Shown here: positions 6,728 through 32,900 of the stretch, piece by piece
How the letters are laid out: every line of letters begins with the position of its first letter
Numbering within the stretch: the stretch's first letter is position 1
NCBI RefSeq assembly: GCF_022045235.1
Contig: NW_027266308.1
Span: forward strand, 69,006,001-69,070,000
Length of the DNA stretch: 64,000 nucleotides
Direction of reading: 5' to 3'
Origin: Haliotis cracherodii
Lineage: Eukaryota
Notes under the pieces: model-generated
The model's database searches: none
The model's input: the letters and a program-made list of their open reading frames with translations, nothing else
Told to the model about the DNA's origin: nothing
Program-made: the position numbers and the translations under genes

Positions 6728-9700
6728 TCAGAGCCAGTCTGCAACATCCAGCATTACTTCATTCAACCAGTCATCTACCTGGAACAAAGTAAACTGTATT
6801 CTCATATACAATATCCTTATTTTTGTCATCATTTGTCTTTTGTTTTGTCTTCAGGATTAAAGTGAATGTTCTGTTATGACACAGTCAAGAATATCCTTGC
6901 TATAGCAGGCTGCCTGTATAAACCAGGCAAGACAGACCAATACCTGATGGCATGAACAACATTTACAGGGTACAATGACACAGCATCAGTACAGCACATT
7001 GTTACCACCCAGTCCTTCATGAGACATGGGGTGCGTGGGACCTACGCGGATCTTACGTAGACTGTTGTCTTCAGATTTGCTCATCACCAGTTTTCTGATA
7101 ATCCATTAAAGATTAATGTGACAATGTTTCTTGAATATAAGAAACGTCAGTTACCTTGCACTTTACACCCAACAGAAAATGTATTCTTACACTGCCAGGG
7201 CGGTAGGATAGCATGGTGGTAAAGCGTTCGCTCGTCACACGGAAGACCAGGGTATGATTCCCCAACATGGCTACAATGTGTGAAACATTTCTGGTGAACC
7301 TCCCCACCACACCCAACCCCACCCCACCCGTGATATTGCTGGAATATTGCTAAAAGCGGCGTAAAAAAACAATACTCACACACTCACTCTCTCAAGGATG
7401 TTAGTTACGTTTGAAATCATGCTTTCTCTTACTGATTGCTGCTGATGGTGTGGTCTGCCAGCGTCTGAGAGCGTGGTCGGCGGAACAACCAGATCATCAT
7501 CTTCCCTTTGGTTCACTAAAGCAGAGATACATTTTTTTATATATCTCTTACATATTCAAATGAAATATCAAGGTCATTTATTTGGAGTTTTGGTTTACAT
7601 TTAAATGTGTTCACCTGGGTTTATCTTACCGGGGTAAAAAATGGGTTCTTGCACCGAGACCTGATTGGTATCCAGAGTTCTGCTTGGGAGAGACCTTGAT
7701 CCAGTGTCTTCTTCAAAGTTATCAATATCCTGAATATTCAAACTCATCTCCGAATCTGAGTCCACACTTATCACACCAGGTGATCCCTGCCTTGCCCTTT
7801 CACTTGAGGACAAATCTTGCTGAGTCTCTGTTTGTGAACTGTTGCCATGTAAACGATATGACCTCGAATGAATGTCTTCATCAAAGTCATCTGGTTCCTG
7901 CGGCATATTTGTGGCAAGGTTTACTTACTGTCTTGAAAACACATTCCACAGAACCTGGAATAAGCTTTTTCAACTTCAGGTCTCACAAGTACACATTTGC
8001 AGATTATAGAAGACCGGGTGTACATTAGAAAAGGCTAAGTTAAAAAGCAAGGAAAAGACGCTTCCGTGGTCTAGTGGATAAAGTGACTGCCCCGAGAGCG
8101 AAAAATCGGTGGTCCGATCCCAGACGTTAAAATGTGGTACTTGTTGTTACCCTGCCTGGTGTTCAGTATTCAGGGTATAAAACAAGGACCTAGGCTGTAT
8201 AATGTGTCTGAGTGGAGTACCCATCTTAAACTGGGACATGGTAGCTCTATAAAAGCAGCATTAGTCCAAACTAGTACAATCAGACACACACATGCATGTA
8301 TGTCGCTACATTAGTACAATACTCTTTAACGGAACCTTAAGACCCATTTCACCTCACCTTCAAATCAAGGGATGAGTTTATCAAAGCTTAGGTAGGCCCA
8401 ATGGTCAGTCTTGCTTGACGTCTATAGCCACGCCCATGCAGGACTATAGTGTCGGGCATGATGCTTGTGGTCGATTCATAACACACTTCTTGCTTAAAGT
8501 TAATTGCTGGTGAGAAAATCTAAATAGTGTGAGATCTGATACCATGTGATCAGACTGACATGATACCTGTGAGGTTGCTATGGAGTGTGCAGTGTCCTCG
8601 TTGTCCCCTGTAGCACCTGCAGTGTGGGCACGCCTGGGATGCGTGGCGTCTCCCCACTCATCTATGTCTGTGTCTGCATCACCAGTCTCGGTCTACACAA
8701 GAACCAAGAATTCTTAAAGCACTTGGTATTGTAAAAGACAACACTGTGTTGCTTTTAGTACATTTGCATCAACTTGAAATTCATGTTTTACTGGCTCTAA
8801 ATAATGAGTATCTGTTTTCTGAAAAATAGACTCCACATGCCTGTAAGAGGCGACTAAAGTAGTCAGGCTCAGTGAAATGGTTGATTGGGTGTCATGCAAT
8901 GCACTGGTGCACTTGTTGTAGCCATGGTTGCAATGCATGTCTGTGGCTTTCAACTCCCGTATGCACCAGATTTGTCACCATCAGATTCCCACCTCTTCCC
9001 CAACTTGAAGAAAGATCTGTCTGGCAAGCATTATTTTTAATTTATGCAACTGATAATGACCTCATTTCATGAAAGGGGTTCTACACGAGAGGGATCCAGG
9101 CACTCTGGCATCACTGGCAGAAGGGTGTGGATCGTGTAGGGGGTGATGGTGAAAATAATTAGCAACCAACTCCATCAACACAGCCTATCATAATTAGGCT
9201 CAAAACTTTTCAGCCACCCCCTGAGACCCGTGAAGATCCGGCTAGAGAATAGGTCTTCAGCATTCCACGCTTGCTGTAAGAGGCGACTATGCTTGTCGTA
9301 AGAGGAGACTAGCAGGATCGGGTGGTCAGGTTCGCTGTCTTGGTTGATGCATGTCATCGTATCGTAACTGCCTAGATCGATGCTCATGATGTCAGACACT
9401 GGATTGTCTGGTCCAGACTCGATTATTCACAGGCCGCCGTCATATAGATGCAATATTGCTGTGTGCAGCGTTTAACAACAAACAAACAAACAAACAAACA
9501 ACAGCCACCTCTCAAATACTGGTCAGAACTGCCCTCATATAGCTGGAATATTGCTGACTATTTAACTAACTTCTCTCACTCACATCATGACCACATTACA
9601 CAACCAACCAGATGAATAACACCTACGGCCAACATAACACCAACATGATAATTTCTAAACATCTGCACATGTCACTTCATATACTTTTCAGCGTATTCTG

Positions 9701-12135
9701 AATGTACCACGTGAGCAACAGTGCCTATTTCTAACTGATTCAAGGAATCGAACAACTGTGAGGTTGTATCTTACCTCCAGGATCTCAGCATCAGACACAT
9801 GGGCTATTTCCAGTAGTCGCGCCTTGAGAGCATTTTCCAGTGTCTGCCTCGTGTCAACCTGATATTGGAAATAAAATCAATAATTTTCATGTGTTATGTC
9901 TTCTATCAGTCGAGTGCTGAACAACAGGTAGCTTATGTAAAGGTGTGATACGGCTGATATTGCCGTGGCACAGCCGAGCTATAGTTGAAGTTATAGTCCG
10001 TGAAATAGTCGTGGTCTAGCTATTTTATAGCCAAGGTAAAGGTGTGGTACTCGGCTATATATGTTCGCCGAAATATACATCTGAAAAACACTGCTTGCTG
10101 TATATTTTTATCTCATGAAATCTTATCCTGAATATATATTTTGACGAAACAAATTTAATTTGGTTTACGTAGTGGACTACCCTTATATAAAAACATAAAC
10201 TTCGATCATGTGAGGACATTGCTTGTAGTTGTTCCATGGGCGACTACCCTTCCAGTTGCTTCCCGAGCGCCTTTGAATGACATGCTATGAATAAGTACTT
10301 GCGGCCATCTGGAGAAACGTGTTATATTGTTGAACACTCAGTTACTGTACATATAGTTCTGTTATTGGTTGAAGCAGCTTCCCACACGCACCTGTAATAA
10401 ATGGCTCATGTCATTTCTGAAGCTGACATTGGTGCTGTGATTGAAGACATCACAGACGGCAGATGTTATCATTTGGATTGACTGGACGTACGTCTTCCCA
10501 TGCTGAAATATACATGAGGAGTTCATGTAGGTAATACGATACATCTTCCCGAGGCAAAAGCGTTAACTGACTATGAAAGTCCAGTCTTATAGTCCGTTAA
10601 CGTCCTTGCCTCGGGAAGATGGGTCGGATACTAACCCTATTTGCACGATGGGCCTTTCCGTCCAAAAGGCAAAAGATAGAATAGGACACCAAATGAAATA
10701 TTTCTGGTACTCACACGAACACCTAACTCTTGTATGGCAGATATTGCAAAATGATGAAACCATCAATTTTGAATATCATTTAGAATAATTCTCAAAGAAG
10801 CATTAGGGGTATCCATGTTAAAGGTTTTGGGAAGATTTAGAAATACCCTGTAAGTTTCATCTAGACACCTACTCCAGGTCTTGGGAAGATTTAGAAATAT
10901 CCTGTAAGTTTCATCTAGACACCTACTCCAGATTTGATGTTTACAACCAAAGTGATCCTCCTGTTACATGTTTCCTCTACCTGGTCAATATCGGTGAAAT
11001 TGTTACGCCTTCTGACTTTACTGACGTAGAAATATATCAATATAGAACATAAACTGCCATCCAAAGGAAAGTATGCACTTGAACATTCTATATGCAAACT
11101 TAAGGTCCACAGCCCAGCTATGATACCTGTATGAAATACATCAACATCGAAAAAAAGTAATTTCTAGTTTGTGTCATTTTTATTCACTATGAAACATGAG
11201 TGTATACTTTCTTTTCTTCGTTAGTTTATGTTAGGTTCCTTCTTTGCAAATACGATCGCTGAACAGAGTTGCGTCCCTTTGGGTACCAGAAACCCATGAT
11301 CGTTGGTTCGAATCCAGGTTGGCCAAAAAATTACGTTTCAAGGTTTGTCAGCACCATACTCGTTGGATTCACCCAGTGGTAAACGTCTAAGACCTGCATC
11401 ACTTTGGGCTTTCCTCCCACATCAAGCTGACACGCCGTGATGTAACTGGGACACTGTTCAAAGCCACGTTAAATTCATCTCACTCACTTATAATTGTCTT
11501 ATACCATCCATCTTTACCCATCACAAGAAGTAAACACAAATAACCTATTACCATCTTCTCATATTCAGTAGCTCTGTTAGCAAAGATGTGTTGTAAGGAC
11601 GAGTGCAGGCTCTCCCCTATGGCCGGATACAACTGGGGAAGGACGTTTGGGTCACCTTGAAGATGCTTGATGATCTCTGCAGAATATACCGTTATGCATC
11701 ATAAATCAACTGTTCCAGTGGAACACTAATCTTTGTCAGACCAGGTAACTCGTTCTTGTTTAACAGACGACTCTAGGTTATGAGCTGAACATTGTATTAC
11801 AAGGGAACATATAATAATTGATTTGCATGACTTTCAATTCAGACAAACCATTTGATTTTTCAACTCTACACTTCTATCCCACGTGACAAACTAAAGAAAA
11901 AACTTCATTCCTTGATCCATTGACCGCCTCCGTGCTCTACTGGTGGAGCCGGTCGCGTCATACCAAAAGACGTTAAAATATACTACTTACCCTGCCTGGT
12001 GCTCAGCATTAATGGGCTTAAACATGGAGTGGTCGGCTCGGAGTCAGTATTCTGTGTCTGAGTGGGGTATTCATCGGCATTAGTACAAGCAGCCACGCAC
12101 ATACACGCACGCATGCACACACGCGCGCATGCATG

Positions 12136-12177
<42 letters not shown>

Positions 12178-15100
12178 TTCATAGCGCTTTTGTTACAAAA
12201 CGTGGTGACCATAGGTATAGTTACATATCTATCTTCAGAGGTTCAATGTGAAATGCTGGACTTCCTGATTGATAACATCTATGTGAAATTTGGGGGTAAG
12301 ACATTTAGGCAAGCAGTAGGCATCCACATGGGCACCAACTGCGCTCCTCTTCTTGCTGATATGTTTCTTTATGCAAATGAATCAGAATTTCTGCTCGTAT
12401 TCGCAAAGTCAACACAATTTGGCCAAGAAGTTTAACTTAAGCTTCAGGTATATCTATAATCAGATATCGTTTAATAACCGCTCAATAGCCAATTCCCGTC
12501 CGCAGATTTGCCCACCTGAACTAGAAATTTAGAAGACCAGCGATCCTTCTTCATCTGTTTCATATTTAGATCTGTGCATAAAATTCAGAGTGACAAAGGA
12601 CTCTCCACAAGATTATGACAAGAGGGATGACTTCATTTCCGATAGTCAACTTTCCCTTTATGTCGCGCACTATTCTAGCAGCTCCAGCCATTAGGAGTTT
12701 ACATTTCACAACCTTTGAGGTCAAATCGAGCATGCTCTTTCTACCAAGAGTTCGGAGAACGTCAACTCCTGCTCAGAAATTGTTTGATCAAGGTAGCCTC
12801 AGCAAACCTTTCGAAAGTTTTAGGGTAGACATGCGGAGGACATATTCAAATTTGACGCATTAGTGACAAAATTATGTCCGATGCAATTCCCTATTTTGAT
12901 CTGTACCAGATGATCCCGTGGTTGTTTTGTTTTTTCAGTTGAACAATTGACTTGCCTTTGCATGTGTTTGTAATGGGTGCCACCAGTTGGGTAGGTTACG
13001 CCCACCTTTTCGAGAACACCTGGCATCATAACTATTGGACAGTGATTCATAAACCATGTTCATGATATAGTCGGAATCGTACAACGGACTGCCTTTGGCA
13101 GAAATTTCTTATGAATACGGAAAGGGTTTGTCGTTTTTATTTTGTAGAAACATGTGGTTTCAAAGTAATCTTAAATATCGTTGTATTTGTTCCTGTGTGC
13201 ATTTGAAGTTGTTTAGAAGATCTGTTTTCACGACGATATTTTGGAGTTTCACATTATATTTCTTATTCTAATAAGCTCTGGGACTTAATATGACAACTAT
13301 TGAATGTACTGTACATTAGGAAATGGTATACAATGCTACAGGGAGATCCACATTCAAAGCACCCCATTACATTGATCAATTAGTGCCTCGAGCGTATTCC
13401 AAGTGTGTAGAGTGACGAAGAACCTCAAGTTAGTGAGTGTGCATCATCCCAAGGCAAGTGAGTTAACCGACTATAACAGTCCGGAGCTGAACTTGTTGGA
13501 AATAGAATAAATACACAGAAAAAACAATTGAGTACATAAAAACTTTCTAGATGATATAGAGTGGATGGTTATCTAGGACAGATCAGTGTGGTGAAGGGTA
13601 CGGGCTGTTACTCGTTTGTCTGTGCTTATACAATAACAGTGCTGAATACAACACATACATGTATCCTATCAGAGAACAATCCTATGCACAGTGTTTTACA
13701 CATCGATCACCGCATGATGAGCTGTAACAGCTGGCTCGTCATGTCTCTGACAACAGCTGGCTGCGGTTTCTAGAATGTAAAGAATTATGCACAGAATGCA
13801 ATTGCATCCTAAAGAGTCAGAATATATCAATAATATTCCTGGTTTGAAAGTTATCTGGTACAGCACAAAAGGATTGGCTACAATTCCCACTTTGTGATTA
13901 TCCAGGATTCTCTACTGTTTTGTAGGAGTCCTCATCACAACCTGTTCTACACCGCCTCACTCACATATTCTACTTCAGAACCAGGAGGTGGCACTCTTAA
14001 GCCAAGTGTGTAAGAGTGTTTTCACTCGGCTATGGCATTACTGTTGTTACGGAAATGGTCTTGGGGTGAGATTTCACACAGGTAGATCTGGCTGTTCCGA
14101 CTGTCACTGATCAATGCGATTAACACCTGGGCCGGGTGATTGCAAACATTGCCAATCACATCAGAGGGATCGATACTTATCTCAATATACAGTGGTACAG
14201 AAAAAAATAGCCACATTCTTCTCAGACTTGCAGTTTTTGTTTACAAGATATTTGAAAGAAGGACGATACATTGAATATTAATAAAACTGTGTACATCTAT
14301 TCAGCTACAACCTTATCAGTATACAAGTGGTGCGCACCACGAATTTTCCACAACAAAATGTCATTGTACTAATGACCTCATGGCCACACATACGAAATAA
14401 ATCTGTCTGTCGGTCAATATACAGCGTATATGTTCGTTTGTATCCAATGTGTATGTCCGCTTGTACACAATGTATATGTTCGTTTGTATACATTGTATAT
14501 GCTCGTTGTATCAGTGTATATGCCCGTTTGTATACAGTGTACTTGCTCCTTTCTTGCATGTATGTCCATGATTGCTGAGGATGTTAGTAAAGTCAATGCA
14601 CACACCAGCCCTTAAAACAGTATATCTAAATCCGTCTGTTATGAAATGTCTAAAATCCAAGTTTATATCTCATCATTGAAGTTGACGTGGTGTTTACATT
14701 CGCTCGGAGACAATCTCAAAATCTTCACTTTTCGAGAACAATTGATGACATCATCACATTACTGATAACATCTTCCTGGCCTACCTCGATTTCTGCTGGT
14801 GTGGTCCTCTGCACGAGGGTCGGAGACAATCACAGCCAGGCACAGAAGGAACGAGGTGGCCCCAGAGGCCCAGGGTGGTAGATAACGCTGATTGGTCAGA
14901 GTGGCTGCAGCTGTCATGTCACCTATGAAGAAACAGACTTGTGCCGATCTACAATTAGGCCAGGCTATTACTTTAATTTTGGTTTATGGATATACAAGAA
15001 TTCAGGTCGGTAGGTTAAAAAACCCACATATACAAATTCCAATTTCAAATATATATATTGTCTTATTTCTTTTTTAAAAAATAAGTTAAAACATGGGGTT

Positions 15101-18100
15101 ATTATAGTATTTTAAGTAATGTTCACATTTCAATATTTTGGCGTCGCTGGAGTCCTAAACCAAGTTTTAAAAATGGTCTAGCCTTAGCCTTTCTCTACAG
15201 AGAACGGAGATTGTTGATGTCATAGGTCTTGACAATCTACTGTAAAGGTATATTTGGTTTCCTATTCATTTCTTTGAAATAACTATGGTTACGCCCAGAA
15301 ACAAGGTTTCCATACTGCATGCCGACTACAGAGCTCCCGATAAGCTTTTGGTGTTGTGGGTATTTTACCCATGCATTTTAAAATAATTGGGTATCAGTAA
15401 TTCTATCTGCGTATTCAAATTTCTGTTACCCACTAGTTTTTACACATGTGGGTATTTAAGTTAAATATTTAAAAACACTACTCATCTAGTCCCTGCAAAC
15501 TGGTGTCGTGTGGGTTTGACAGCTTTATAGGACTTAAAAATACCACGATACTTCCGCACGAAAGTGTGATGGCAAATGATCATGATGTGACTGTGATCGT
15601 GGAGTTTGGCAAGGTTGACGGAATGCCCGTTTATAATTTCAAAATAAGTTTTGCTAATCGAATACGCAGGGTTACTTCACAATATTTTGATGATACGCAC
15701 AAATATTATTTTTGTAGCGTATCTGTAATGTTCGTTGCGTATTTGATACGCTTGGATTATATTTTACTGCGTATTTCTGCATTTCTGATGCGTATTTCAC
15801 GCAGATACGCAGCTTATCTGGAGCTCTGCGACTAAACAGAAGTCCAGATTCTAAAATATCATGCTAGAATAACAATTTAAAGACAGACAAAAGGAATATT
15901 TATACCAGACGATGATCCAGTTTTACACACAGGATGAAATGTGTCCTTGAGTGCTGGTATGTTTAGAGTTGGTGACGTGCATATAGGTTATACACCACAG
16001 TCACGCCGCTCAGCCTACTGGCATTTCCAGGACTACTAAAGGTTTCTTGTCAATATCTCTTTGTTTCAGTAATTCACATTCAGCATCAAACCATTTCTTT
16101 CTTTCTTTTCATGTAGAAAGCAACCCAACATAGAGCTTCTGCGATATTATCAAAACTCAACGTTCGAAATTACTGAGACGACAGGTTTGTTCAGTAATTT
16201 CAAAGTCAAAGAAAGATCTCTCATTAGAATATCCCCAGTCGGTTTGGTCTTATTTTTCTGACATATATGATAGAATAATTCCAACTTTCAAACTTGATAG
16301 TGTATTGCAATAGATTACAAAACAGTAGGTTTGGTTTTACTCTCCCAATATATGATGTAATAAAATTTAAATTTTCAAACTGGGTGTGAATTTTATACCA
16401 TAAGGCGCCCTATGAAATCAGAACAATGTTTACAATATTTCACTTTAAGGGACGACAGGACAGAGTCGAACCTTGATGCAGGTTGAGATAATCTGTGACA
16501 GCATAAACGTTTTCTAGTTTGTTTTTATCAGATTGACGTCATGAGTCTTCCGAGCAGGTTTAGTTGGGATTTCCCGATGAAACATATTTTGGCGAATGTA
16601 CAGCTTACTTTGCATCTTCTGTTCCGCGTCTGTCAACCACAGTGACACTGTGTTCCAATCTGTCAGTTTGTGTATGTCCAGCATCGCCAAATGCCCCCTG
16701 CTCATCAGCAAAGGGGTCAGTTGTGGACCATAAAAATTTATCTGGATCAATTAAGGATGGACAAGGTCTGAGAAACACATTTCTATCACGGGTCATGGGT
16801 GGCTCCTGTCGTCTAGGGCGACGGACCTCAATGTGCGGAGTTGCGTCCCTTGGCTACGCCAGAAACCTATGATTGTTGGTTCGAATAATGGTTCGCCTCG
16901 TTTGTTTCTAGGTTTGTCAGCACCAAACCCGTACACGTGGGTTCCACTAAAGTGGTAAACGTTTGAGGTCTGCATCACTTTGTCTGAGACCTGCATCACT
17001 TCCTACAGTAAGTTGAGGCACTGTGATATAACTGAAATACTGCTCCAAGTGGCTATACTGCTCACACTGCTATCAACTGTAATGCAAATCCACTGGTATC
17101 CCATTTCAGCAACACACATGTGGCAAGGGGGGCCCTCTTGTAATGCAGGGGTAGAAACTAACAGATTCAGTCCACTAGTCCTTATAATGATAACATATAG
17201 CAAAACCCCTAAAAATGGCTAATTTCTACTAGCCCTTGATACCTTTACTATTGGGCAGATTGGCAAGGACTACAGGACTAGTGCCAATTTCTAACGCCGT
17301 AATGCAATACAATGATTGAAGGCCAAATTCAATGCACCAAGTCTTATCAGTTCTTGTACCAGAGGATACGAGGACATGGCCTGTGATTCCCCCGGAGCCT
17401 GTATGCTGTGGGTAACGCTCTGTGACTGGGTAGAGACATGCCAGGGTTGACACGGAGAGGGGGGAGGGGGAGAGAGGACCCCCAGAGCTCACTCCAACTG
17501 CCATGCTTCTTCCCTTGAACCCTTTCACAGTCCCACAACACATAGTCTTCAGACAACCCTTCCTTGAACACAACCGGAAACAGGATGTTTTGTCAGATAC
17601 CTTTAGAACAAATACTAACACAAAATAGTCAACTGACTAATTAGGTTTGGTTTGCTTTATTTGTTGTTTAACGCTGCAGATAGTTGTACATAATCGAGTC
17701 TGAACCAGACAATCCAGTGACTGACATCATGAGCATCGATCTATGCAATTGGGAAAGGATTAGATGCGTAATGGGACAATCAAGGGTTGCTACAAACCAA
17801 TTATAACCCGGATCACCAATTATGCGACTGACACCATCAGAATGTCATCACCACAATGGGAACGTTTTATCCAGTCACACAACAATAAGCACATGAAATG
17901 AAAAAACTTACCCAAAGAAGAATCTTAAGTCATCAACTAACGACACACCCTTGACTTCAACGAAATTCCTCACACTATAAACATGAAAAGAAATGTCTTA
18001 TTTTGCGCTTTTGGGTTTATTTCATACATTAAATTCAGGACTAAAACGTGAATTTGTAAATCTGACGATTGGTCATGGGATAAAATTGAAACATTTTAGT

Positions 18101-20398
18101 TCCTGGTCTAATTCACGAATGGAAACCTGTCCTTCATATATCATATAGGCTAAAATTAACGGCATGTGAAAAATAAAAAAGCAAATTAATATGAAACACT
18201 GGTCGACTTTAATGTGCCCTAAATAGTTTTGATACTTTAAACACAACCTATAACAAGCTTCCAACTCACCTAAAGTCTGTCTGACATACAGCTCCACACA
18301 CTTTCATGGAAAATGTCGTCTCCAACTAAGACACATATTACTGAAGTTACAAACTGAACCAGCATACTAAATAGCATATTATTTGTTATAGTATTAGCAT
18401 GTAATGCAAATCTGAATCCTTTCATGGTAGGACTATTTATAGTCCAAGTGTGACAATTGTCTAGCCATGATACGTATACTTGTAGGGTACGGTTTGGGAT
18501 CTAGTTCTAGATCTAGAGAACAGACACATTTATCTTTATGACACATCTGTTGTAGGGCATTACAGATATTTCCAACACGCCCATCATCAGAGGGCCTTTA
18601 CTGTTTTCAGATACTGTTTAAAACTCTCCACTGCTAAAATATACAAGACGTTGTCGGAATGTTCAACTAAAGCAAACCTTTCCATGTAGGAATTTCAGCT
18701 TGTGTAAGAATCGGTGTATAAGCTGTCCCTCTGACACGATGTGGCTCTCACTCTGGACAATCTGAAATAGGTGTCTATGAATCAGAAACTGATAGGGAAC
18801 TAATGTTCATAATCTATGTGAGGCAATGTGAAGTGCCCATGCAATAAACTACAGAGACGAGTCACAGTAGGACAAGTGACTGTAATGAGGCAGATATAAT
18901 CCCATCTGTTTTATTCTAACTCTGGATGCTATAAACATATTTTGTTTGTTTCTTTGTTGTTAAACGCCTCACTCAGCAATATTCCAGCTATATGACAGTG
19001 GTCTGTAAACAATCGAATCTAGACCAGACAATCCAGTTGAGCACCTTGAGCATTGCTCTACACAATTTGGAATACCATGAAATATATCAACCAGTTAGCA
19101 TCCTGACCACCCGATCCGTTAGTGGCCTCTTACCACAAGCACAGGTTGCTGAAAAACAAACCGGATCTTCATGGGCAACACATTTTGACGTCCCATATAG
19201 GTTATGATATACTTGACACACATACCCTGAAATGTATCACAAAAGGGGGCGGAGTCTCGTTGAAGTCTGTATTTGGAGCCTCTGTTGAATGCTGACATTT
19301 GAGGGTTATGTCCCCCAGATCTGTCTGTTCCAACCAGAAGACCTCCTGCACACTGCCACGCGTGTGGTCCTGACAGGGCCGCTGTACTGACAAGTGACCC
19401 TCCTCCTCGCCACATTGCATGTACAGCAGTACCTCCGTAAATCGTGTCAGGGCCTTTTCTGTCAGCAAAGATTCATAGCAGTGTATGTGAGACTGTGTTT
19501 TCTTGTGTCGAATATGGACATAGACGATAGGCACATGTTAAAACCTTAATGTAACATTATTCATCCTATGGAAAAAGTACGTATTTGCATGATAAATATC
19601 TGAATGTGTTCCCATCCTTGGGAGTAAATGTAATTGTTTTACCAATTCAAATGGAAATAACGGGGGTTCAGGAAAGTGTAGTATTCAAAGATACTGGGAA
19701 AACTGTCCATAATTATACCAGGGCTCGTATTTGAAATAGATTTATGTAATTTCTAACTCAGTGAAACCGTGATTTGAATACCTTTGAACAGATTTTGTAA
19801 ATCCAAGTCTTGACTACTGGAAACTGAAAGTGGAATATATAACTGATCAGTTTTGTTTTGTCAATACATATTTCCACATTAGTATAGTCACACAACATGA
19901 ATTTGTATTGATATTAATGGAGGACTTGGGCGTCAATTTCCTGTTGTGAAAAATCAGACCAAATAGGTTTTTATTGCACTTAATAACACGTGACGTGACG
20001 GACGCTGACTTACCCCGAACATAGAACACTTGTCTGTCATAGTCATGATGAACTTTTTTCTTTGCTTTGATGTCAACAGCTATGCTGCAGCTAGACACAT
20101 CGAACTCAGCAAGAGGAAACGACAACACTAACGCTTGTATAACCTAGTGCAAACAATGTAATATATTAAAACAAAGGGCTATTGAAACATCAGTATTCAT
20201 TGCTTTAATTTAGTTAAAATCACACTTCTATATTGACTGAAGTCCTTTATATTTGTTGAACATATATTTACAAGCTAAAGACAGCGGTATAATAATAACA
20301 GACGCTTCTAGATACAACCTCAACAACTGATTCATAAATTGGAAGGTGTTGCATGCCAGCATGCCTGTTGACCAGCTTCAAGTGGAGACACTTGATTC
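6728..20398 (-). CDS. TOP6BL: Type 2 DNA topoisomerase 6 subunit B-like (TOPOVIBL, SPO11 partner), ~16 exons, 5' end uncertain
   Basis: Minus-strand exons ~20398-20319(?), ~20104-20014, 19458-19226, 18761-18678, 18325-18270, 17974-17912, 17562-17370, 16741-16609, 14922-14785, 11676-11552, 10502-10392, 9858-9775, 8692-8567, ~7897-7615, 7515-7433, 6778-6728 join in consistent phases. Collinear motifs resemble recalled vertebrate TOPOVIBL: IHRFLHKLKFLHGKLETTFSMKVCG, INFYGPQLTPL..LTDW, HSTNVSFRNDMSHLLQVDTRQTLENALKARLLEI, and terminal DDWLNEVMLDVADWL*. Confidence 0.82.
12230..13030 (+). mobile_element. Decayed Penelope-like retroelement (RT fragment plus 3' end) in a TOP6BL intron
   Basis: MLDFLIDNIYVKFGGKTFRQAVGIHMGTNCAPLLADMFLY matches the PLE RT motif GIPMGTNCAPLLADLFLY. 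Downstream YLDL and FPIVNFPF blocks are broken by frameshifts and stops. Confidence 0.85.
15329..15828. mobile_element. 500-bp non-autonomous DNA transposon (hAT-like MITE)
   Basis: TIRs CAGAGCTCCCGATAAGCT / AGCTTATCTGGAGCTCTG (1 mismatch), flanked by direct repeat CGACTA. Confidence 0.8.
16742..17369 (-). other. U12-type (minor spliceosome) GT-AG intron in TOP6BL
   Basis: 5' site GTATCCTCT at 17369-17361. Branch site TCCTTAAT at 16757-16750 lies about 10 nt before the AG, with no polypyrimidine tract. Joins the flanking exons in frame. Confidence 0.75.
17146..17298. mobile_element. ~150-bp MITE; related copies at ~62790-62944 and ~63090-63257
   Basis: Imperfect CAGGG(G/T)TAGAAA termini and flanking TAATG duplication. 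The body (GTCCACTAGTCCT...TTGGCAAGGACTA) is shared with two oppositely oriented copies near 63 kb. Confidence 0.65.
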
Positions 20399-21764
20399 CT
20401 GCAAAATAAGAGTAATTGCCTTGGTGTCGTGGATAATAAAGTTACTAGAAATATATTATTAATTGCCAGGCTTAGATTCAGTCCATTAGAACAGTGAACG
20501 AAAGATGATTAGATATTATTATACATTTTCTTTTGTTTGATGCCTTATTGAAAGCTATCACTTTCAAGGGATTACCTAGTCACCGAAAATGACCCTGATA
20601 TAGAAAGAATACTGAAGCTAAAAAGTATGAAACAAACGGGGTATGTAAATTATATTAATGAGACATGACAAATCTGAAGGGAGGGAAACAAATTCGTATC
20701 TAGATACCAAATGATGTGCTCCATTTCAACTTCTCGTTTGTTTCAATGTTCTGATTGCTACATGGTCCTTTAAATAGTCAGTTATTCAAGATGACCATAA
20801 TAAACAAAAACATTTTGCGGAATGTTGTGCAAACCTTTTCATATATTAACAATGTAATATATTGATAAGAAATTGACCAATGCTAATTTCAAGTTAATAA
20901 CTTAATATTTTCTCTCCAATTTGTCTCCATTCTCTTTACGTCGCTGGCAATATTCCAGCTATCGCGACGGCCAGTTATTAATCGAGTCTGATCAAGTGAC
21001 TGAAAACATGAGCGGCGACCCACACCACCAGGGTACACAGCTTGTCAGTGTTCTGGCCCCGAATTACCAATGCCTCTCCCATGTAGAGGGTTTCATAAGA
21101 ATGAAGGGATACTGGAAACAATGTGACAGAACAGACCTAAATCTCGGCCAAAAGTGGCCCTTGACATAGGCCTGTACGCATGACATTTTGCACGAAATGT
21201 ATGAATTTTCAGTGATATTGCTTGTGACATGTAACATTTTCAAGATATCTTCAGCACATTTTGGATATCAGTTAGTCAGTGTCCTAGAAAGTGAACCGAT
21301 CTGAATCCCTGATATCTTTCATTAATAATATTATTGTAAACACACTGTAGTCGCTATAGTTGCTCGAGTGTGGTCCTATCACATATGTTTCTGTGTCTCA
21401 ATACTGGGAATAGACGATGACGTGAACTTTCAAACCGTACATGATTGTATGTCTAAAGTTAGCAGAAGTAAACTGGACATTAAACTTACAGTTTGTTTGA
21501 CTTGCACTGTTCCACTTCGAAATTGTCTAGAACGAACGGCACTCATAAGCTCAATGAAAACAGTAAACGTCTGATCGAAATAAGGGGGATAACTCCCAAA
21601 CTTCGCTCAAGGGAGGTAATCAACCAGTTGCGTGATCACAAGTAAAAAATAATTATAGCTTTGATGCATGTATCTCAAAAACACAAATATAACGTATTTG
21701 GTAAGCAGATTCAAAATTCAAAATGGTAAACAAAATTGTGCATGTAAAAAAAAAATACTGAAGC

Positions 21765-21902
21765 NNNNNNNNNNNNNNNNNNNNNNNNNNNNNNNNNNNN
21801 NNNNNNNNNNNNNNNNNNNNNNNNNNNNNNNNNNNNNNNNNNNNNNNNNNNNNNNNNNNNNNNNNNNNNNNNNNNNNNNNNNNNNNNNNNNNNNNNNNNN
21901 NN
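21765..21902. other. Assembly gap (N run)
   Basis: Run of N characters. Confidence 1.
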
Positions 21903-22381: not shown

Positions 22382-25300
22382 ATGAGGTGAGTATCCACAC
22401 CACCCGCCATGCACGAAACTTTGCAACATCAGCTAGTAAATGATATTTTCATAGTCTTCGGCAATGGCCGAGCCAAGATCTGGGCCTGGGTCACTGTTGT
22501 TTACTCCAGACGATATGCTATTTATATCACCCTGTTTACCATCTCAGCTCCCACCGACTTCTACTCAGGAATGTGCAAGCGTAAATTTGGCAACTAGATA
22601 TTTGAGTCGCGTCATTTTGATAACATTCTGATAAATATTGATATATAAACCTCGTATCCTGTCATTAGAGCATCTTAATATCCACAAGCACTGGATGGCG
22701 GGGAATATTTCGCGGCCTGAATAATGCATCGCGCTAGACGTGTTTACATCAATGTTACACCGGGGATAGATGAGGGCCGTTGACTCCAGTCTGCGCCACT
22801 CTGCAGTTTACACCACATAGTCCCACGTACCCATCCTAGCGAACCATTATTCCAAGAATATGAGGTCGCGTGCTGCAAGCATTGCGTGATGCGACATCAT
22901 GTTTTAGTAGGAGATTGATTCCTTCGATAGGTTTACCAACAATATGAGGTAAGACGTATTTACTGTATACATTTCGTGTTGAATGTAAGTACGTATGTTG
23001 AAAGTTATCAGCGCGGCGTTTGTTTTTAAGACGTCTGTCACGGCTACATCTTTCCGACGAAGGAAACAAGGAGGTAGATCTTAATCTGAGGAACAAGTAG
23101 TGCGCCTGATTCTTAAAACGAACTAGCATACTTAAACGAATATATTTATTCCATGTGTTCGGAATTCGGTTTTTTGTTTGTACCCATGAATTTTCCATCA
23201 TCTAACGGAAGGTGTGTGTTCAGCTTCTGGAATCACAGCATGCAAAGCACCTGTGTTTTGAGGATGATATTGATGTATTTGAAATATGCTATTTATCAGG
23301 TGTAGCATTTGATTCCTGATATGTTTTTTATCACTTTTAAAGTTTTCGTAAAATTGTTTGGGCGTTTTTCACTAATCTATGTAAAAATACATCCTTTCTA
23401 CACATCCATCTTCAGTGTAGTGACAGACTGTGTTGAAGGAAGACCCTATTAGTACATAATTATACAGCACAGCTGGTCAATTAAGGGAGGTAACACAACA
23501 ATAATGCCAGAAAGGAATGGTAAAGTTTTTAGTTAAAACAGTGCATGACAAGGAAATAGTCCAATATGACGGGGTTAGGTGGAAGTAATAACACGGCATA
23601 TGGTGTATTATAGATCAGTTATGACAGCCAAGACATGTGTCTGTCTTATTTCCTCATTGATCCTGTTAGAGTGTTTTAGGTTGGCTTTGATCCATGTTAG
23701 GACTAACAGGTAACCCACATTTACGATTACAAGATACAAGTGTGTGTGATAACCGAAAGCGGTGTGGTAGTAAGATGCTATTGGTAAGTAGCATGGTCCT
23801 TTGTGTTTTGGAGTTATTTCCCTTTGTATTGTACAGGATGAGTATGTACAGTGGACAGTATATTCTCACCTTTCATTAACGTCAGACAGTGTATGACAGT
23901 AATATTGTCATGGCATGTATAGTAGAAACATCAGGTGTTTCTTGGACATGAGCTCCATGCAGATATGGAGCCTAAATGTATTTTTAAATGTTCATCAAAT
24001 TGTCATCTAAGGAGCATTGTGACATTAACCACAAGCAGCATGCATACTGTGCTGTGTGATATCATTGCACATTATTTCATCTGGCCCAGCAACCAATCGA
24101 TGGGTCAACTGCAACTGATACAGCCAGGATACCTACCAGGCACAATAAGATTAATAGTCAGCATTACATTAACTTAATGTTTGCTTTCATGTTTTCCCCC
24201 GTAGACGCCTCCCACATGGGGATACGTATGCAGAGTAGTTCCCCTGTGAGTATCACCGTAAATCCCATCCATGTTGGGATTCCAGGTTGAATTGTTCCCA
24301 AAGGCTACACCGATAGAACCCATTCTCGTGGGTATTCCGAATAGTTCCCCTGCTGGAACCCCACAGACACCACCGTGCGGGTATTCCAGGCAGAATAGTT
24401 GCCCCGTGGTTACCCTGCAGATGCTGCTGATGTGGTATTCTAGGCAGAATAGTTGACCCGTGGTTACCCTGCAGATGCTGCTGATGTGGTATTCTAGGCA
24501 GAATAGTTGCCCCGTGGTTACCCTGCAGATGCTGATGATGTGGTATTCTAGGCAGAATAGTTGCCCCGTGGTTACCCTGCAGATGCTGATGATGTGGTAT
24601 TCTAGGCAAAATAGTTTCCCCTTGGTTACCCTGTAAATGACGCTGATAGGTATTCTAGGCAGGAAAGTGCATCTGTGGGTTTCCCGTATATAAGCCCATG
24701 GGTTCAATTCCCGGTTCGCCCTGATAATGTTTCGAGGTTTGTCAACACCATACCCATGGGTTTCACCAAAGTGGTGAATGTAAACCTGGATCACTCAATT
24801 CAGGTTACATATAATTGAAATATTCATTCACTCCCAAATATTATGCTTTCAAAACTTGTCCCCCCAAGGTAGTTCCCGGTTAGAATTAACATTCCATGCT
24901 GGTTGTAAGAGGCGACTGGATTGGGTAGACATGCTCGGTGACCTGTTGTGTGTGTCTCATAATATCTGTATTTTTTTATTGTCCTGACCTACTGACCTAG
25001 AATGGTTTATTTACAGACTGTCATATAACTGATTGTTGAAATGCAAACAAACAAATACGAATCAATAGTTTTCTAGAAATAGACCTAACATGTCTGACCT
25101 TTTACTTCTCTTGCAGTGTCTTCAGTGATGTGGAACAACATGACTGTCGAGTGGTTGCCTCCGTAGTCAACAGTGACATCAGCGAAGAGGGGTTGCATCA
25201 GGGGCTCTTTGGCGTCATCAACCAGGAGTGTCCAAGATGCGTGGCTGCCATCTTAAAGTTTGGGGTTCCAACTGAGGTTCGTGATTCTGACCACTTCACG

Positions 25301-26914
25301 CCTCTAGCCGTCGCAGCCAAGGTGGGCTCAGCCCCGATCGTGGAGCTCCTGCTGCAATGGCACTGCAGTGCCTCATCCCCGAGTGGGCCCTTGGGAAACA
25401 CACCGCTACACAACGCATCAGCAGACGGCCATGTTGATTGTGTGCAATGTCTTATCAACGCCAATGCAGATATTAATGCCAGGAATACCCAAGAGGACAC
25501 TCCACTCATACTTGCCGCTATGCATGGCCACTTGCCAGTCGTGAAGCGATTGCTAGCCTTCCACGCCTCCGTCAGACGGAGGGGTTACCACGAGAGAACT
25601 GCCCTACACTGTGCAACAGAAAATGGACATTTGAGTGTCTGCAGGTTTCTAGTGAGTGCCAAAGCTGATTTAGAGGAAGAAGATACATTTGGCAATACTC
25701 CCTTGATATGTGCTGCCGAGAAGGGCTATGTGGAGCTGTTGAAGTTGTTTCTGTCCAACAAGTGTGATGTGAACCGCATGAGCCATAGTGCCGCCACTGC
25801 TCTCCACTACGCGGCTCAACATGGTGACAGCGTCTGCTGTGGGATACTTCTGCAGAACGGAGCCGAGATAGATGCCCAGGACATCCGCCGCTTCACACCG
25901 CTCATGATGGCCGCCATGAACGGCCATGATGACGTAGTGGGTATGCTCATAGATTGGAAATGCAATGTTAATATGGTGGCTTACAACAAGCGTATTGCCC
26001 TCCATCTGGCTGCTGAACGAGGCAAACTCAAGTGTTGTAGTCTTCTTTTGAACGCAGGCGCAAGCATCGATAGTCAAGACTCTCTGGGATGTACGCCAGT
26101 TCACATTGCAGCTCTCAAGGGGCATGTGCAGGTCATGAAGTATCTCATAACCAGCGGTGCTGATCTCCACAAAAGACCAAACAATGGCCACAGTCTCTTG
26201 CACTATGCAGCAGCCGGCGGCAACGAGGATTGCTGTCAAGAACTGATCTCCAGAGGCTTTGATATCAACGCCCAAAACAATGATGGAATCACGCCTCTCA
26301 TCAGCTCAGTACACACCAAGCAAGTGACGACCGCACAGCTACTGCTGCAGGCGGGATGCAAGACCACCTATCGTGGCCTTCATGGCATGACGGCGCTCAA
26401 CGAAGCAGTCTTCTACAACCACCCACTTCTGCTGTCAATGTTGTTAGATTACGGAGCCGACCCAGACATTGAGGACGATGCAGGAACTTTGCCGCTGTGG
26501 TTCGCCGTCGACCAGTCTTCCATGGAGAACCTGAAGCTGTTGCTGAGGTCAAACTGCGGGTTCAACATGAAATCCACACTGAGCAATTCCTGTGGGCCAT
26601 GCAACGCAATAGAGCACGCTCTGCACAAACAAAAAATTCAAGTCATCATTTGGCTAATTAGCACTTATTGTGAGGAGGCTGCCAATGTTCTTCGATCTCA
26701 CCTGTCCGAGTCAGACAAGTTATCTTCCATGAGCAAGACCTTCCTCGCCAATGTCCACGAGCAGCTTCAGGCACCACAGTCCCTGCTTTGTCTTTGTCGG
26801 AAGCAGATCAGAGCTGAGTTGGGTCAGGGGAAGATCATCACCAACAAGATCCGGCAGCTGAAACTGCCTAATGTTCTCAAGAACTTCCTGGACTTCAGCG
26901 ATCTCACGGAGTAG
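22382..26914 (+). CDS. Ankyrin repeat and C-terminal SOCS box protein (ASB-like E3 ligase substrate adaptor), ~600 aa
   Basis: ATGAG|GTGAGT at 22382-22386 splices in frame to TTGCAG|T at 25117 (MSVFSDVEQH...). One long exon runs to the stop at 26914 with many ankyrin repeats (GNTPLHNAS, TPLILAA, TALHCA...) and SOCS box PQSLLCLCRKQIR...IRQLKLPNVLKNFL. Confidence 0.9.
24381..24662. repeat. 54-bp tandem repeat, ~5 copies
   Basis: Unit GTATTCTAGGCAGAATAGTTGCCCCGTGGTTACCCTGCAGATGCTGATGATGTG. Confidence 0.9.
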
Positions 26915-29900
26915 CAGGTTGCTTCCGGGGTGTGGGCCAGCTTCCAGGTAGCTGTCATGTAAATACCTATCCAAGAACGATGGACACCAATCATGGCAAT
27001 TGGACATGTGCTTAAGTCACAAGTAAATGGTAGTATATAATTACAATTTTGAAAAATGTTAGATGGAAGTTTTGATCGTAAAGGAATCCTAGTTGTATCT
27101 GTCACTAAACCAGAGGAAGGTCGTAAGAGTATGGTTGGAGTGTTGTGGTGTCAATATTGTTTGTCATGTTGAGGAACGGCCATTTTGTCTTTTCTGGTTG
27201 GACATATTGGGGTAAGACAATAAATTGTAACACAAGGGAGAGAATACCGGGTTCAGCTTCTGGACAGTGAAACGTAATTTGAGAGCTTGGGAAAATGGTC
27301 GATCCCTTCACTATTCTGTATTATTTACGATAGAATAAAAATAATCAAAGTGTTTAAATTAATAGAAGCAAGGGTGCTGTAACATGTTGGCATCTTGGTT
27401 TGAATAGCTGGGTCACATGTGACATGTTAAACCGGAAGAACACGCATTCAAACTGGACTTAAGCACAGTCCAACAGAAACCTTCCCTGAGAGAGGCATGG
27501 CTATATCGTTCGGGAAGGTCAGGTTCCAGATATTGTGCAATACTTTGAGTGAAGTTAATTGTATTAGTCAGAAGCGACAGTATACCTGTGTCAAGGAAGT
27601 GATCCTAACACAACTCTGATATTGAGTGCCAGTATAGACGTGTTAATTGGAGCTTCATTATTGATAACAGATAATGCAATCGAAGTATAACTAGTCATAA
27701 TTGTCAGTATTATGATTACATATGCACCTAACATGTTGACTAGAATAGGCGTGGATAAGTGTTGTGTGTAGTCAGGCTTCATGGACCATTTTGTTTCCAG
27801 GAGATTCATGCTTTCGGGAGTCTGTTTTACTACTTTTATACACATGGACGTATGGCAATGCCAGGCCTTTATTGTGGTAAAGTCAAGTTCTTTTGGGCTT
27901 CGAAAAAATCACCAAACGATGTCTTTCTACAGTATACATTCTCAACTGTCCTTAAAACAGTCATTTAATCTTTCATCAAGTTTCACATGCGATGGTCGCG
28001 CCACATGAATCACGTGTTCAATGTATATGTTCAGAGGCCCTTGGGGAGCTGCTACAGGTGTACCAATGAGTGACTTCATAAAACGCTTACAATTTCGTAA
28101 TTCGTCGTGGGGGAACGGTTGGCCCAGTCGTCTAAGGCACCGCGATTCGCTGTGCAGAGTTGCGTCCCTTGAGCACGCCAGAAACCTATGATTGGTTCAA
28201 ATCCCGGTTCGTCCCTAATTATGTTTCTAGGTTTGCCAGCACCATACCCGTGCTGGTGGGTTTCACCAAAATAGTAAATGTCTGAGACCTTATATCCCTA
28301 TCTAAAGTTGGTGGTATATGTTTCTTCTGCACTCTATGGATGCAACTGAAGACGACAGCATTGGTTTGTTGTGAAATGACTTGGTAGACCTGTACCATGA
28401 CCCCCATCGTAGATAGAGACTTGTAATGTGCTACTCAACCCTTGGAAGGGAGAGACAGGGTGGGTCGGTGGGGCTGAATGTGCGCCATTGGTTTCAAATG
28501 TCGCCGTATCTCATATTGCAATGGAAACGACTCATTTTCAACTTCGTCAAAGTCCTAGTCTGTCATACAGACGCTGAAACAAATATATCTAATGAAGCCC
28601 ATGCAAGTCTATATTAGTGGGCAAATCTAGATTACTGCAGTATCTGAAAATGAAGAGTCTCCGGGCTCCCTTTTATCATATTTTTATTAAGATAATTTAA
28701 TAACTGTTTTTTGTCTGTAAGATATGTTCATGTCAGAGATTAGATGTTTGCCTACCCAGGTCCCGTTATCCCTGCTAAGATGAGTAGTAGTATTACTACA
28801 GGAAGAGTTCATTTGTCAGCAAGTTAGTATTCAATCCAGTTGCACATTTCCTCTTATTACACCAACAGTATTGTCGTATGACACATAGAGAAAAACACTT
28901 CGCCACGATAGACTCTTGATACGACAAACAAATGTAATGTTAATCGAATCAATGTTGAATGTACTGTTGGTTGTCAGACATTAATTATTATTTTGTGTTT
29001 ATATGTTGGTATAATTGTGCTATGGATCTACAAGCATTACGACGAACAGTTGATTATAGTGCAGGTTGTGGTTGGGTGGGTTGGCGGGTGTAGATGATTA
29101 AGAGACGGTAAGGTAATGGGAACAGGTCAGCAGCACTTTGATGTGAATTCTATCGCGTATTTGCAATTTTTTATTTATTTGGTTTACGGACCGAAACGAA
29201 GTCAGGAATGTACTAAATAGATCCACGTTTAAAGCTTGTATAAGTCACACACATTAGGAGAAAAATAAATTACAAATTAAGTCCCTGCCTTAACTGAGAC
29301 AAAAGAAGACCGCTCAGTGGCCCCCGATTTTCTGTGAAAGTTCTGAGCCACCGCGAATACTATTTATTGATACAGCAGTACCCAACCAGTGTCTGGCTTT
29401 GCAAATGTTATAAAACGTACATTCCTGTAACATTTCATTTTTTATATTCCCCGTAAATATCATATTTGTTTAACAAAACAAAACAAATGACGAGTTTTTT
29501 TCGACCGCCTATACCCAAGCTTTTTACCAAGTAAATCCGTAAACCAACTAATGAAAAAAAGGCCATAATTATCCGTGCCCTTTAGAATGAACACCTGGGT
29601 ATTGTGTCGGGAGTTTGCGGCGCCATGTCGTATAGGTTGTTAGACTGTTATGCTATTATCGTTTAAGTTTATTTTGTTGAATGTCATAGAGATTATTTTG
29701 TGAATCTAGTGCTTCAGTCAGTTGTTGCTAAGATGTAAATTATACGCATATATTATATATTTACATATATACCATTATTAGAATAAACAAGCAGTTTATT
29801 AAAATATGTTCTGTTATTCTAAGATTTCTGAATCGGGCGGCACTGCGTCCACATTGTAATAGCTGACATGTTTCGTTTAGACATCGGAGTTAGTGAGTGG

Positions 29901-32900
29901 ATTGCTGAATGGTGTTTTGTGGCTATATTAGATCTTATGTTTTAATGCAGTATGGGGCCAGTCGGGTAGCCTCGTTGTTATAGCGTTCGCTCGTCTCTCC
30001 GAAGACCCGGGTTCGATTCCCGACATGGGTACAATTTGTGAAGCCTATTTCTGGTTCCCCCGCCGTGATGTTGCTGGAATATTGCTAAAAGCAACTCACC
30101 CACTAATGCAGTATGATAAACGGTTCTGCCATGGAGTTAACGCAGTGAGTGAGTTGCTGGTGGTATTTTGTGGCTATATTAGGTCCTATGTTTTAATGCA
30201 GTATGATAAACGGAGTTAACGCAGTGTGTGATTGAGGGTGAATGTTTTATACGGTCAGGCCGAAGTCTAGTCCAGGCGTAACAGTGGTTGATAACGGGGC
30301 CCTGTACCACAAAGCGATCGTAGCGCAACGACAGTCTTAAGTCTCTGTAAAGTATGGGAGTTCACCTTTGCCCTACGATAGCTTTGAGGAATGGATCCCT
30401 GGCTGTCAAAGAACGTTTGGACACAGTCGGTCGGGACCCACATTGTCAATGCATGGTCCCTATGACAGGTACCTGTTGTGACCATGCACCCGACGATACA
30501 GCCAGGGACGATACAACTGTGACTTGAGACGCAGATTTCCAGCGTACGTGTGCCTTAACTCCAAGGAACCTTCTCTCCCAGAGACTTCCTCGAGTTGACA
30601 AGCACTGCGTATTGTGGACATAATATATACAGGGAGAAAAGCCTGAGGTACTGGTGACCTATTTGTCCCGGGGCCTCAACAGGGAGAAAAGCATGAGGCA
30701 CTGGGGACCAACTGTGCCTCAGAATACCAACACAGAAACTGGGAACCTATTCTCCACAGGGAGACAAGCATGGTGTAAACAAACAGAATATGTGAATTTT
30801 GTGAATTAGAACGTGTACGACGGTAGCAACAGCAATATTTTCATTGAACTACCCGGAGAGTTACCACTTAAAGTCGTATTGTGGCCTCTCGAGACCACTT
30901 TATTGTTTGGTTTATCAATGCTGATGTGCTGAAGTGGTTATGTGTGAATCAACATTATATGCAGTTATTTGACGGCTATAAACGCTTTGATCACGAAAAC
31001 CCTGAAGAGACCAGTGTGTGTGGATCACTGAGAATGACTCTCTCTATTTGGAAATATAACGTCACTACATGTAAGTATTTCATATTGACCGAGAAGGAGC
31101 GTTCAACCGTATTAAGATTAAAGGGTTACATACTGTTCCAAGACATATATTAATTATATACATAATAAGTTCCACAAACCTTATTAAACCGTTCAGGGTT
31201 GTGCACTAACTACAAACGTCTTTGAATGGCGATTCTCTCACTGTGTTTCTGGGTTCCACCTTGGCAATGGTCCGCCCGTACACTGTTACCTACAACGATG
31301 GAGCTTTGACATTATGACGAGAAAGACGAAACATTTTGCGTTATATTGGAAAAAGTTAATATGGAAATTGTTTTCGAATTCCAGTTAAGCAGAGAATGCG
31401 AACAAATGCGTAATGGTTATATAGGTGCGGTTTGATTGAAAAATGGGTTTGTGGCATTTTTTGTCGACAAGTTAATGAGTATTCAAAATATTTTACTTTA
31501 TTTTATTTTTCTGAAAAATGAAAACAACATCAAGTTAATGTGGAAGTGTGAACTATTATGATTAACAATTTCGCTTTTCCGGATGTTTTTTGTGTGCAGT
31601 AAACAATACAAACTAATACAGTTGGAAAGCACGCGATTTTTCTTACCTGTATCCACTATTGAAACACTTTCAATATTTACAAAACATATACTTAACACAA
31701 CCTTTATAAAACTAGAATGTATGCCTTCTTTATCCCAGTTCATGAATAGGTATAATTAGTCATGCGCGGCGACACATAGTTCTCCGAGTTCTTACCGCGT
31801 GTTACAAAGACCGTGATCACTTTCAAATGGTGGCCCCCAACTGAATTATGCTATTACAATGTTGTTGATTGTTGTGTAAATATTGGGATCCCATAACCCC
31901 GATGTTTACCGATAACCCACGAACTTCCCTCAGGGGGGATCCCTTGATCCGAAAATCGTCGCGTGTTGAGCCACCCGACACTGAAACAAGTTATCTGGGA
32001 ATGCGCGAACAAAGGGCGCCCCCAACCGTGACTGCATTTAAACAACCACTTTCTCTCTGGGAGCAGACCCGTATGTGCCTCCACCCTAGTCTGCGATGAC
32101 AATCGGACAAAAAACTGAATTCACCCACCCACCTTGTGTCCGACGCACACGAATCCTGGGCGCGTGGATCCATCAAACGGAGCGACCCCATTCCCGCCAC
32201 TGGACGCATGGCAGACGACTCCGTAGATGAAAGTACTTGTTTCTAAGGTAAGCGTACAATTCCTTGTCCTAGTTAAAGTAAATGTTTTGGCAAAAACCAT
32301 TTCAGTGTTTAGTCCCTGTAATCTCATCCTAAAGCTGTTGTTGTTGTTTGTTGTTTAACGCCGCACTCAGCAAAAGTCCAGATATATGACGACTGTCTGT
32401 AAATAATCGAGTCTGGACCAGACAATCCAGTGAATGACATCATGACCATCGGTCTAGGCAATTGGATACGATGGTATGCATCAACCAGGTCAGTGAACCT
32501 GACCACCCGGCGTTAGTCCCTCTTACGACGAACATAGACGCCTTTTCGGCAAGCATGGGTTGCTGAAGACCTATTCCATCTCGGATCGTCACGGGTTCTC
32601 ATCCTAAAGCTGCATCCCGCGTGCTAACAGGGTGTGGTCGTGAGTTCCAATCACAGATTCGCCCTGATAACGACCATTGGTCTGTAAGAACCATAACCGC
32701 GATCGTTAGTTTCACCAAGTGGGGAACATGACTGTTCAGAACGTCGTTAACACAACTCATCACTCTGTCGTCAAGTCGAGTGAGTTAATGACGTGTGGTG
32801 TTGTCTGCCGCCTGTCCGGTAGTCCGTCTGTCGTCAACGTTTGCCTTATTGACATCTCTGAAACTAAAAGACCCATACGATGTAAGCTGCTGGGGCACGA

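Follow-up and report, generated by a model that had tools for sequence, protein, structure and literature searches.

The stretch of DNA analysed here, called the window in what follows, covers 64,000 nucleotides (nt) of the abalone Haliotis cracherodii (NCBI RefSeq assembly GCF_022045235.1, contig NW_027266308.1, positions 69,006,001 to 69,070,000 of the forward strand); its minus strand carries a chain of small exons that is a real, transcribed and spliced Haliotis gene with 17 coding exons. Judged by its sequence, this gene is very probably the Haliotis ortholog of TOP6BL/TOPOVIBL (C11orf80), the B-like subunit of the meiotic TopoVI-like complex. TOP6BL is the partner required by SPO11 for meiotic DNA cutting. 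A preliminary description of the locus, made from the letters of the window, had already read the chain as a hidden and highly divergent TOPOVIBL gene.

A spliced and transcribed gene of 17 coding exons

The coding model comprises 17 exons and 2013 nt on the minus strand, from an ATG at 20354 to a TGA at 6728-6730, where the preliminary description had counted about 16 exons; all 16 introns are of the GT-AG type and all phases agree. The five peptides quoted in that description do lie on the minus strand where it had placed them. Transcription was assessed with Logan contigs of 4 public runs from 4 studies (X1, X3, X4 and X6), aligned to positions 14450-20449 of the window; the RNA label of these runs is a tool's guess. 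The contigs of the 4 runs skip nine to ten intervals, every one of which ends in GT..AG on the minus strand, and the skipped joints lie at 20140/3-20316/9, 19823-20014, 19458-19782, 18761-19226, 18325-18678, 17974-18270, 17561/2-17911/2, 16741-17370 and 14922-16610. Exons follow each other in series within single contigs, one of 2301 nt (depth 155) and another of 1811 nt. Because ten introns have been removed at exact canonical borders, these contigs derive from spliced RNA, and the transcript is abundant among the contigs of the 4 studies. The mapping of RNA to the junctions, which had been proposed as a check of the chain, has thus returned exact GT-AG joints across 14785-20319 in contigs of 4 runs.

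Contig support covers exons e0 to e9 (20319 to 14785). Exon e0 (20319..20394) contains the 5' untranslated region and the first 12 codons (ATG 20354-20352), and its joint with the next exon (20140->20316, cut +3) occurs in the 4 runs; its transcribed extent reaches at least 20394, 78 nt beyond the joint, and probably about 20520, with an X3 contig carrying 209 nt ahead of the piece that starts at 20140 in e1. Exon e1 (20014..20143; 130 nt, phase 0->1) has both of its joints in contigs, and 41 of its 43 residues match Haliotis rufescens; it is followed by e2 (19782..19823; 42 nt), bounded by the joints 19823-20014 and 19458-19782, and by e3 (19226..19458; 233 nt), which carries the peptide PPFVIHFR at its end and whose joints are present in 4 runs. 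The joints also delimit e4 (18678..18761; 84 nt), encoding a helix with IHRFLHKLKF, e5 (18270..18325; 56 nt), of which 18/18 residues match H. rufescens, and e6 (17912..17974; 63 nt), as well as e7 (17370..17562; 193 nt), a Cys/Gly/Ser-rich linker with joints in 4 runs, and e8 (16609..16741; 133 nt), which begins with INFYGPQLTPL. The last exon covered by contigs, e9 (14785..14922; 138 nt), encodes the genus-invariant RY.PPWA.GAT and matches H. rufescens in 45/45 residues; its joint 14922-16610 is found in 2 runs, and the aligned pieces end at 14785.

The contig joints revise the 5' end of the chain. The frame leading to PPFVIHFR is open across the whole of e1 and enters it from e0, where ATG 20354 gives MQHLPIYESVVE; the N-terminus obtained from this codon is the same as in the congeneric Haliotis proteins, and that of e0 is identical to the H. 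rufescens protein. The ATG at 20046, together with those at 20040 and 20022 in e1, is out of frame because e3 starts at 19458, the position given by the contig joints, and not further upstream; once spliced, these frames reach a stop after 28 codons, early in e3. As a side observation, the mRNA leader (20014-20143 and 20354-20365, minus strand) contains upstream out-of-frame ATGs, and the one at 20362 overlaps the start-codon region; the out-of-frame ATGs (20362 in the leader; 20046, 20040 and 20022 in e1) are possible elements of the upstream-open-reading-frame type.

Downstream of the contigs, exons e10 to e16 are placed by collinearity with Haliotis proteins alone: tblastn of the Haliotis rubra protein is collinear with the window down to the last codon, and the exon borders fall at canonical sites. 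Exon e10 (11552..11676; 125 nt) encodes part of a helical region, its tblastn match is collinear, and its AG/GT sites and phase fit; e11 (10392..10502; 111 nt), which contains STNVSFR, and e12 (9775..9858; 84 nt) are likewise collinear. The acidic tail of the protein begins in e13 (8567..8692; 126 nt), also placed by collinearity, and continues in e14 (7630..7954; 325 nt), an acidic, Ser-rich and probably disordered stretch with 100/108 residues matching H. rufescens. Exon e15 (7433..7515; 83 nt; 25/27 residues matching H. rufescens) precedes e16 (6728..6778), which holds the last 16 codons (VDDWLNEVMLDVADWL) and the TGA. The minus-strand chain with agreeing phases down to the stop at 6728, as originally proposed, therefore stands, by contig joints in e0-e9 and by collinear Haliotis proteins beyond.

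Related proteins are already present in databases. A phmmer search with e3 (77 residues) against 1.84 billion representatives retrieved a 673-residue protein of H. rubra (residues 71-147, E = 4.9e-34), XP_046571146, annotated as "uncharacterized protein LOC124279375"; a word search with the H. rubra protein added those of Haliotis asinina (669 residues) and H. rufescens (LOC124140652 isoform X2, 673 residues), all three bearing the name "uncharacterized protein". Word searches with the H. rubra protein and the alignment gave only these three Haliotis proteins and none from H. cracherodii, and the word search with e3 alone was blank, as expected from the protein-length window of that search. 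Counted in whole codons, the model of the window is 95.6% identical to H. rufescens (634/663 residues), 76.0% to H. rubra and 71.5% to H. asinina, and a single copy of the gene is present in the assembly (1.18 Gb, 80 contigs). In the three congeners, which have NCBI models, the gene is unnamed rather than hidden. The search with e3 also matched a 4047-residue protein in 18 stretches (exon residues 11-36, 38% identity, E = 1e-20), which suggests a repeat protein that has a short motif in common with e3.

These data also decide whether the chain might be a fortuitous succession of short open frames with no gene behind it. Such a reading could appeal to the single exons, which have no Pfam or PDB match (ten single stop-free segments searched against Pfam gave nothing relevant); it is refuted by the spliced transcripts of four studies and by the identity of the chain to an annotated congeneric protein, and a chance origin is excluded because 634/663 residues match H. 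rufescens.

Kinship with TOP6BL and domain architecture

In the family searches, the congeneric Haliotis proteins served as proxies for the spliced protein of the window. In 3/3 orthologs the top Pfam family is PF15091 (DUF4554), with residues 156-311 aligned to profile positions 1-167 and E-values of 7e-6 (H. rubra), 3.2e-5 (H. asinina) and 4.6e-4 (H. rufescens); the first of these is already corrected for 24,736 models, and the precomputed Pfam assignment of the H. rubra protein lists PF15091.12. The matching stretch is encoded by e4-e8: it begins in e4 (H. rubra residue 156), extends into e8, and includes the abalone segments IHRFLHKLKF...SMKVCG and INFYGP, which belong to two of the four collinear matches listed in the preliminary description. 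A second approach, the ESM-Atlas feature search, places H. rubra residues 1-480 closest to six clusters of chordate "type 2 DNA topoisomerase 6 subunit B-like" proteins (score 0.95-0.96, 189-191/256 features), in which PF15091 occurs in 96-100% of members; according to the tool, a score of at least 0.95 is reached about once per 100 shuffled proteins. Residues 1-215 of H. rufescens alone lead to the TOP6BL-like family again (0.93, 180 features), and MutL/Mlh1-type GHKL clusters come as weaker neighbours (0.79-0.81) that are leads only. Because of the names of these clusters, DUF4554 can be equated with the TOP6BL family. The proposal of a TOPOVIBL ortholog has thus gained support from PF15091, albeit below threshold, from the ESM-Atlas clusters, from the architecture and from the C-terminal pattern described below, and the gene joins a known family as a member without a name as yet; models of it already exist in three congeners.

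The inferred protein is about 670 residues long, and its parts probably follow one another as an N-terminal domain, a Cys/Gly/Ser-rich linker, a helical transducer-like region, an acidic tail and a terminal Trp helix. The N-terminal α/β domain appears GHKL-like, with its Bergerat ATP-binding motifs lost: a pattern scan found no conserved N-box, G1 or G2 among the Haliotis proteins, and the alternating strands and helices over residues 1-200 in an AlphaFold2 model are only suggestive at its mean predicted local distance difference test (pLDDT) of 33. The same model predicts, with low confidence, helices at about 317-472, directly before the acidic, Ser/Thr-rich tail of about 180 residues (478-657), in which 34-36 D+E stand against 11-12 K+R. 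Of the GHKL-like and transducer region followed by an acidic linker that had been announced for this gene, the acidic tail and the order of the parts fit, and the fold and the helices remain of low confidence.

The protein ends in an amphipathic helix that contains two Trp residues, and the last 16 residues (VDDWLNEVMLDVADWL) do not differ between the window, H. rubra and H. rufescens. In the crystal structure of mouse TOPOVIBL bound to the REC114 PH domain, the contacts are made by L561, W562, V566, L569, E571, W572 and L573, and the W562A substitution abolishes the binding of TOPOVIBL to REC114 (PMC9671922). When the abalone C-terminus, WL...M..V.DWL, is anchored on its last Trp-Leu, the residues W, L, M, V, D, W and L fall at the mouse contact offsets: at -1, -3, -6, -10 and -11 from the final Trp stand Asp, Val, Met, Leu and Trp, where mouse has E571, L569, V566, W562 and L561. 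This spacing fits the REC114-contact pattern with the first pair swapped, and makes the segment encoded by e16 a candidate REC114-binding helix. The terminal Trp helix and the order of domains also agree with published metazoan TOPOVIBL (PMC9665070, PMC9671922).

Both potential partners have loci in the same genome that score over the cut-off: a SPO11 locus (PF04406, TP6A_N) at C34:69312182-69312289 with 39.5 bits and a REC114-like locus (PF15165) at C1:67878328-67878492 with 42.5 bits. By homology to mouse, the DNA-cutting complex would form when the helical region grips the N-terminal helices of SPO11, and the REC114 PH domain would serve as the docking site of the terminal helix; this docking would in turn tie cleavage to the axis-bound machinery that acts before the double-strand break (DSB).

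In comparison with mouse and human TOP6BL, whose family gives both the top profile match and the closest embedding clusters, the abalone protein shares an apparently GHKL-like N-terminus devoid of ATP-binding motifs, a predicted helical region, behind it a long, non-conserved C-terminal domain ending in a short Trp helix and, on the sequence level, the hydrophobic/acidic spacing at the REC114-contact offsets when anchored on the last Trp-Leu. It differs from them by a very low sequence similarity (sub-threshold in Pfam, no phmmer match) and, with respect to mouse, by a first contact pair that reads Trp-Leu instead of Leu-Trp, by an end that falls exactly at Trp-Leu where mouse continues for six residues, and by a length of about 670 residues against 579, with a more acidic tail. 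Like the "GHKL-like" class of metazoan TOPOVIBL (Brinkmeier et al. 2022, PMC9665070), it has no N-strap or Bergerat motifs, a linker in place of the H2TH domain, a predicted helical C-terminal part of the transducer and a C-terminal domain with a putative REC114-type helix; unlike the classes described there, its three-helix SPO11-binding module is suggested by low-confidence secondary structure only and its WKxY motif is reduced to at most one invariant Trp. The main text of PMC9665070 makes no mention of molluscs. Archaeal and plant TopoVIB, including Arabidopsis MTOPVIB, represent the presumed fold of the distant ancestor, a GHKL domain plus a transducer, but the abalone protein has neither the ATP-binding motifs nor H2TH, and WKxY is not conserved; HATPase_c and Topo-VIb gave no Pfam match in the three Haliotis orthologs, and by its sequence the protein falls outside the true TopoVIB family. 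Yeast Rec102/Rec104 and Drosophila MTOPVIB play the same role of SPO11 partner, which the abalone protein would have by homology, yet they are split or devoid of a GHKL-like domain, whereas the abalone protein is a single chain with an N-terminal domain.

Several points weigh against the assignment to TOP6BL. The PF15091 scores of 25.8, 23.6 and 19.8 bits (H. rubra, H. asinina and H. rufescens) lie below the curated gathering cut-off of 27, so that the profile search first suggested as a check returned the expected family on top in three orthologs without reaching the threshold; moreover, the three orthologs are 75-82% identical and amount to one line of evidence rather than independent ones. 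Searches against PDB sequences with phmmer (e3, e8 and the H. rubra protein) and with a 3-sequence profile gave no match, and AlphaFold2, run on the 3-sequence alignment, reached a mean pLDDT too low for fold comparison. The WKxY motif is not intact in the pattern scan, where at most one invariant Trp remains; the tissue and organism records of the runs are coded; and an in-frame TAA (7925-7927) would leave the protein ~145 residues short of its C-terminus. An exon-by-exon search of the genome with PF15091 gave no candidates, but its controls were silent too and the search is uninformative.

The score under the cut-off, the phmmer search of e3 against 1.84 billion proteins and the word searches, which found no match outside Haliotis, and the AlphaFold2 model, which gives no structural confirmation, would also suit a real gene encoding a lineage-specific protein unrelated to TOP6BL, whose Pfam and embedding neighbours reflect chance or composition. 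Such an origin is highly improbable: E = 7e-6 survives correction for the number of models, the same family, profile start and region recur in all three orthologs, the hidden Markov model and the language-model features agree, the latter at a score that about one in 100 shuffled proteins attains, and the terminal Trp helix and domain order match the metazoan TOPOVIBL of the two cited studies. If the gene is the TOP6BL ortholog, as we favour, the SPO11 partner would receive its missing name in a genus of aquaculture and conservation interest, in which triploidy, sterility and hybrid fertility matter, and a family that is hard to trace through divergence would gain a gastropod member that has apparently kept its GHKL-like domain.

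The in-frame TAA of exon e14

Exon e14 contains the TAA at 7925-7927 (minus strand) in the context ...SRQ-TAA-VNL..., where all three congeners have Gln; the plus-strand base 7927 is A in the assembly, and a G would give CAA. This codon is the only defect of the gene. It may be a heterozygous or erroneous base, it may be bypassed through a 3' splice site at 7897, an in-frame acceptor whose use could skip 19 codons including the TAA, or it may be a true truncation; it could also mean that the sequenced animal carries a deleterious allele.

The codon raises the question as to whether this copy, although a TOP6BL ortholog, is a null allele, a truncated one or an incipient pseudogene that has lost the acidic tail and the REC114-binding helix. 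Besides the TAA at a position of conserved Gln, the absence of a second copy in the genome and of any H. cracherodii protein among word-search matches that included three congeners speak for it. This reading is nonetheless rather unlikely: apart from the TAA, GT-AG borders are preserved in 16/16 introns with phases in agreement, contigs of 4 studies contain the transcript in abundance, and the acceptor at 7897 could bypass a base that may itself be heterozygous. Divergence from H. rufescens after the TAA is also not above that before it (e14 100/108, e15 25/27, e16 16/16).

Less probable still, in our estimation, is that the reference carries a real and possibly fixed nonsense codon that cuts TOP6BL before the acidic tail and the REC114 helix in a gene that is still spliced and transcribed. 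Were it so, a TOP6BL without its link to REC114 would be tolerated and DSB control would be rewired, as proposed for Caenorhabditis elegans; alternatively, the protein would be rescued via the in-frame 3' splice site at 7897.

U12-type intron, repeats and neighbouring genes

The intron between e7 and e8 (16742..17369, minus strand) has splicing signals of the U12 type. Its 5' splice site is GTATCCTCT (17369-17361), and the joint 16741-17370 is exact in 4 runs; TCCTTAAT at 16757-16750 ends 9 nt before the 3' AG, which puts the branch A some 10-11 nt away from that AG, and the intron has no polypyrimidine tract. As the marks of a U12-type intron are a 5' splice site resembling /GTATCCTT, a TCCTTAAY branch site at 10-15 nt from the 3' end and the lack of a polypyrimidine tract, this GT-AG intron is, by its sequence, of the U12 type handled by the minor spliceosome; the odds of both motifs arising by chance in any of the 16 introns are about 1e-5 by our rough estimate. 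No literature link between C11orf80 and U12 introns was found, and the intron may serve as an orthology marker should vertebrate TOP6BL contain a U12-type intron at the homologous position.

The introns also harbour interspersed repeats, for which a gapless search was blank and which were revealed by blastn. A short interspersed repeat occurs at least 10 times in the window, including two copies within introns of the gene (17685-17770, 18940-19060, 9349-9494, 32344-32465, 34992-35124, 44247-44376, 48190-48316, 54180-54310, 56502-56644 and 59580-59712); its summed contig depth is at least 1e5 in 4/4 runs, and many contigs jump between copies. A second family, also of very high contig depth, lies at 16780-17060 (within the U12-type intron), 11266-11406, 28117-28286 and 43971-44160, and the segment 15250-15850 is likewise deep in contigs, with no second copy in the window.

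Elsewhere in the window, a run of 138 N at 21765-21902 lies about 1.3 kb upstream of the 5' end of the transcript, and 5 kb upstream, on the opposite strand, 25130-26914 (+) encodes a single-exon ankyrin-repeat protein of 594 residues with a C-terminal SOCS box (ASB-like). Further along are the terminal exon of an AlkB-like 2OG-Fe(II) oxygenase (50623-51030, +), a Harbinger-type DDE_Tnp_4 transposase open reading frame with a helix-turn-helix (HTH) domain (57212-58276, -) and the N-terminal exon of SLC3A2 (62144-62575, +).

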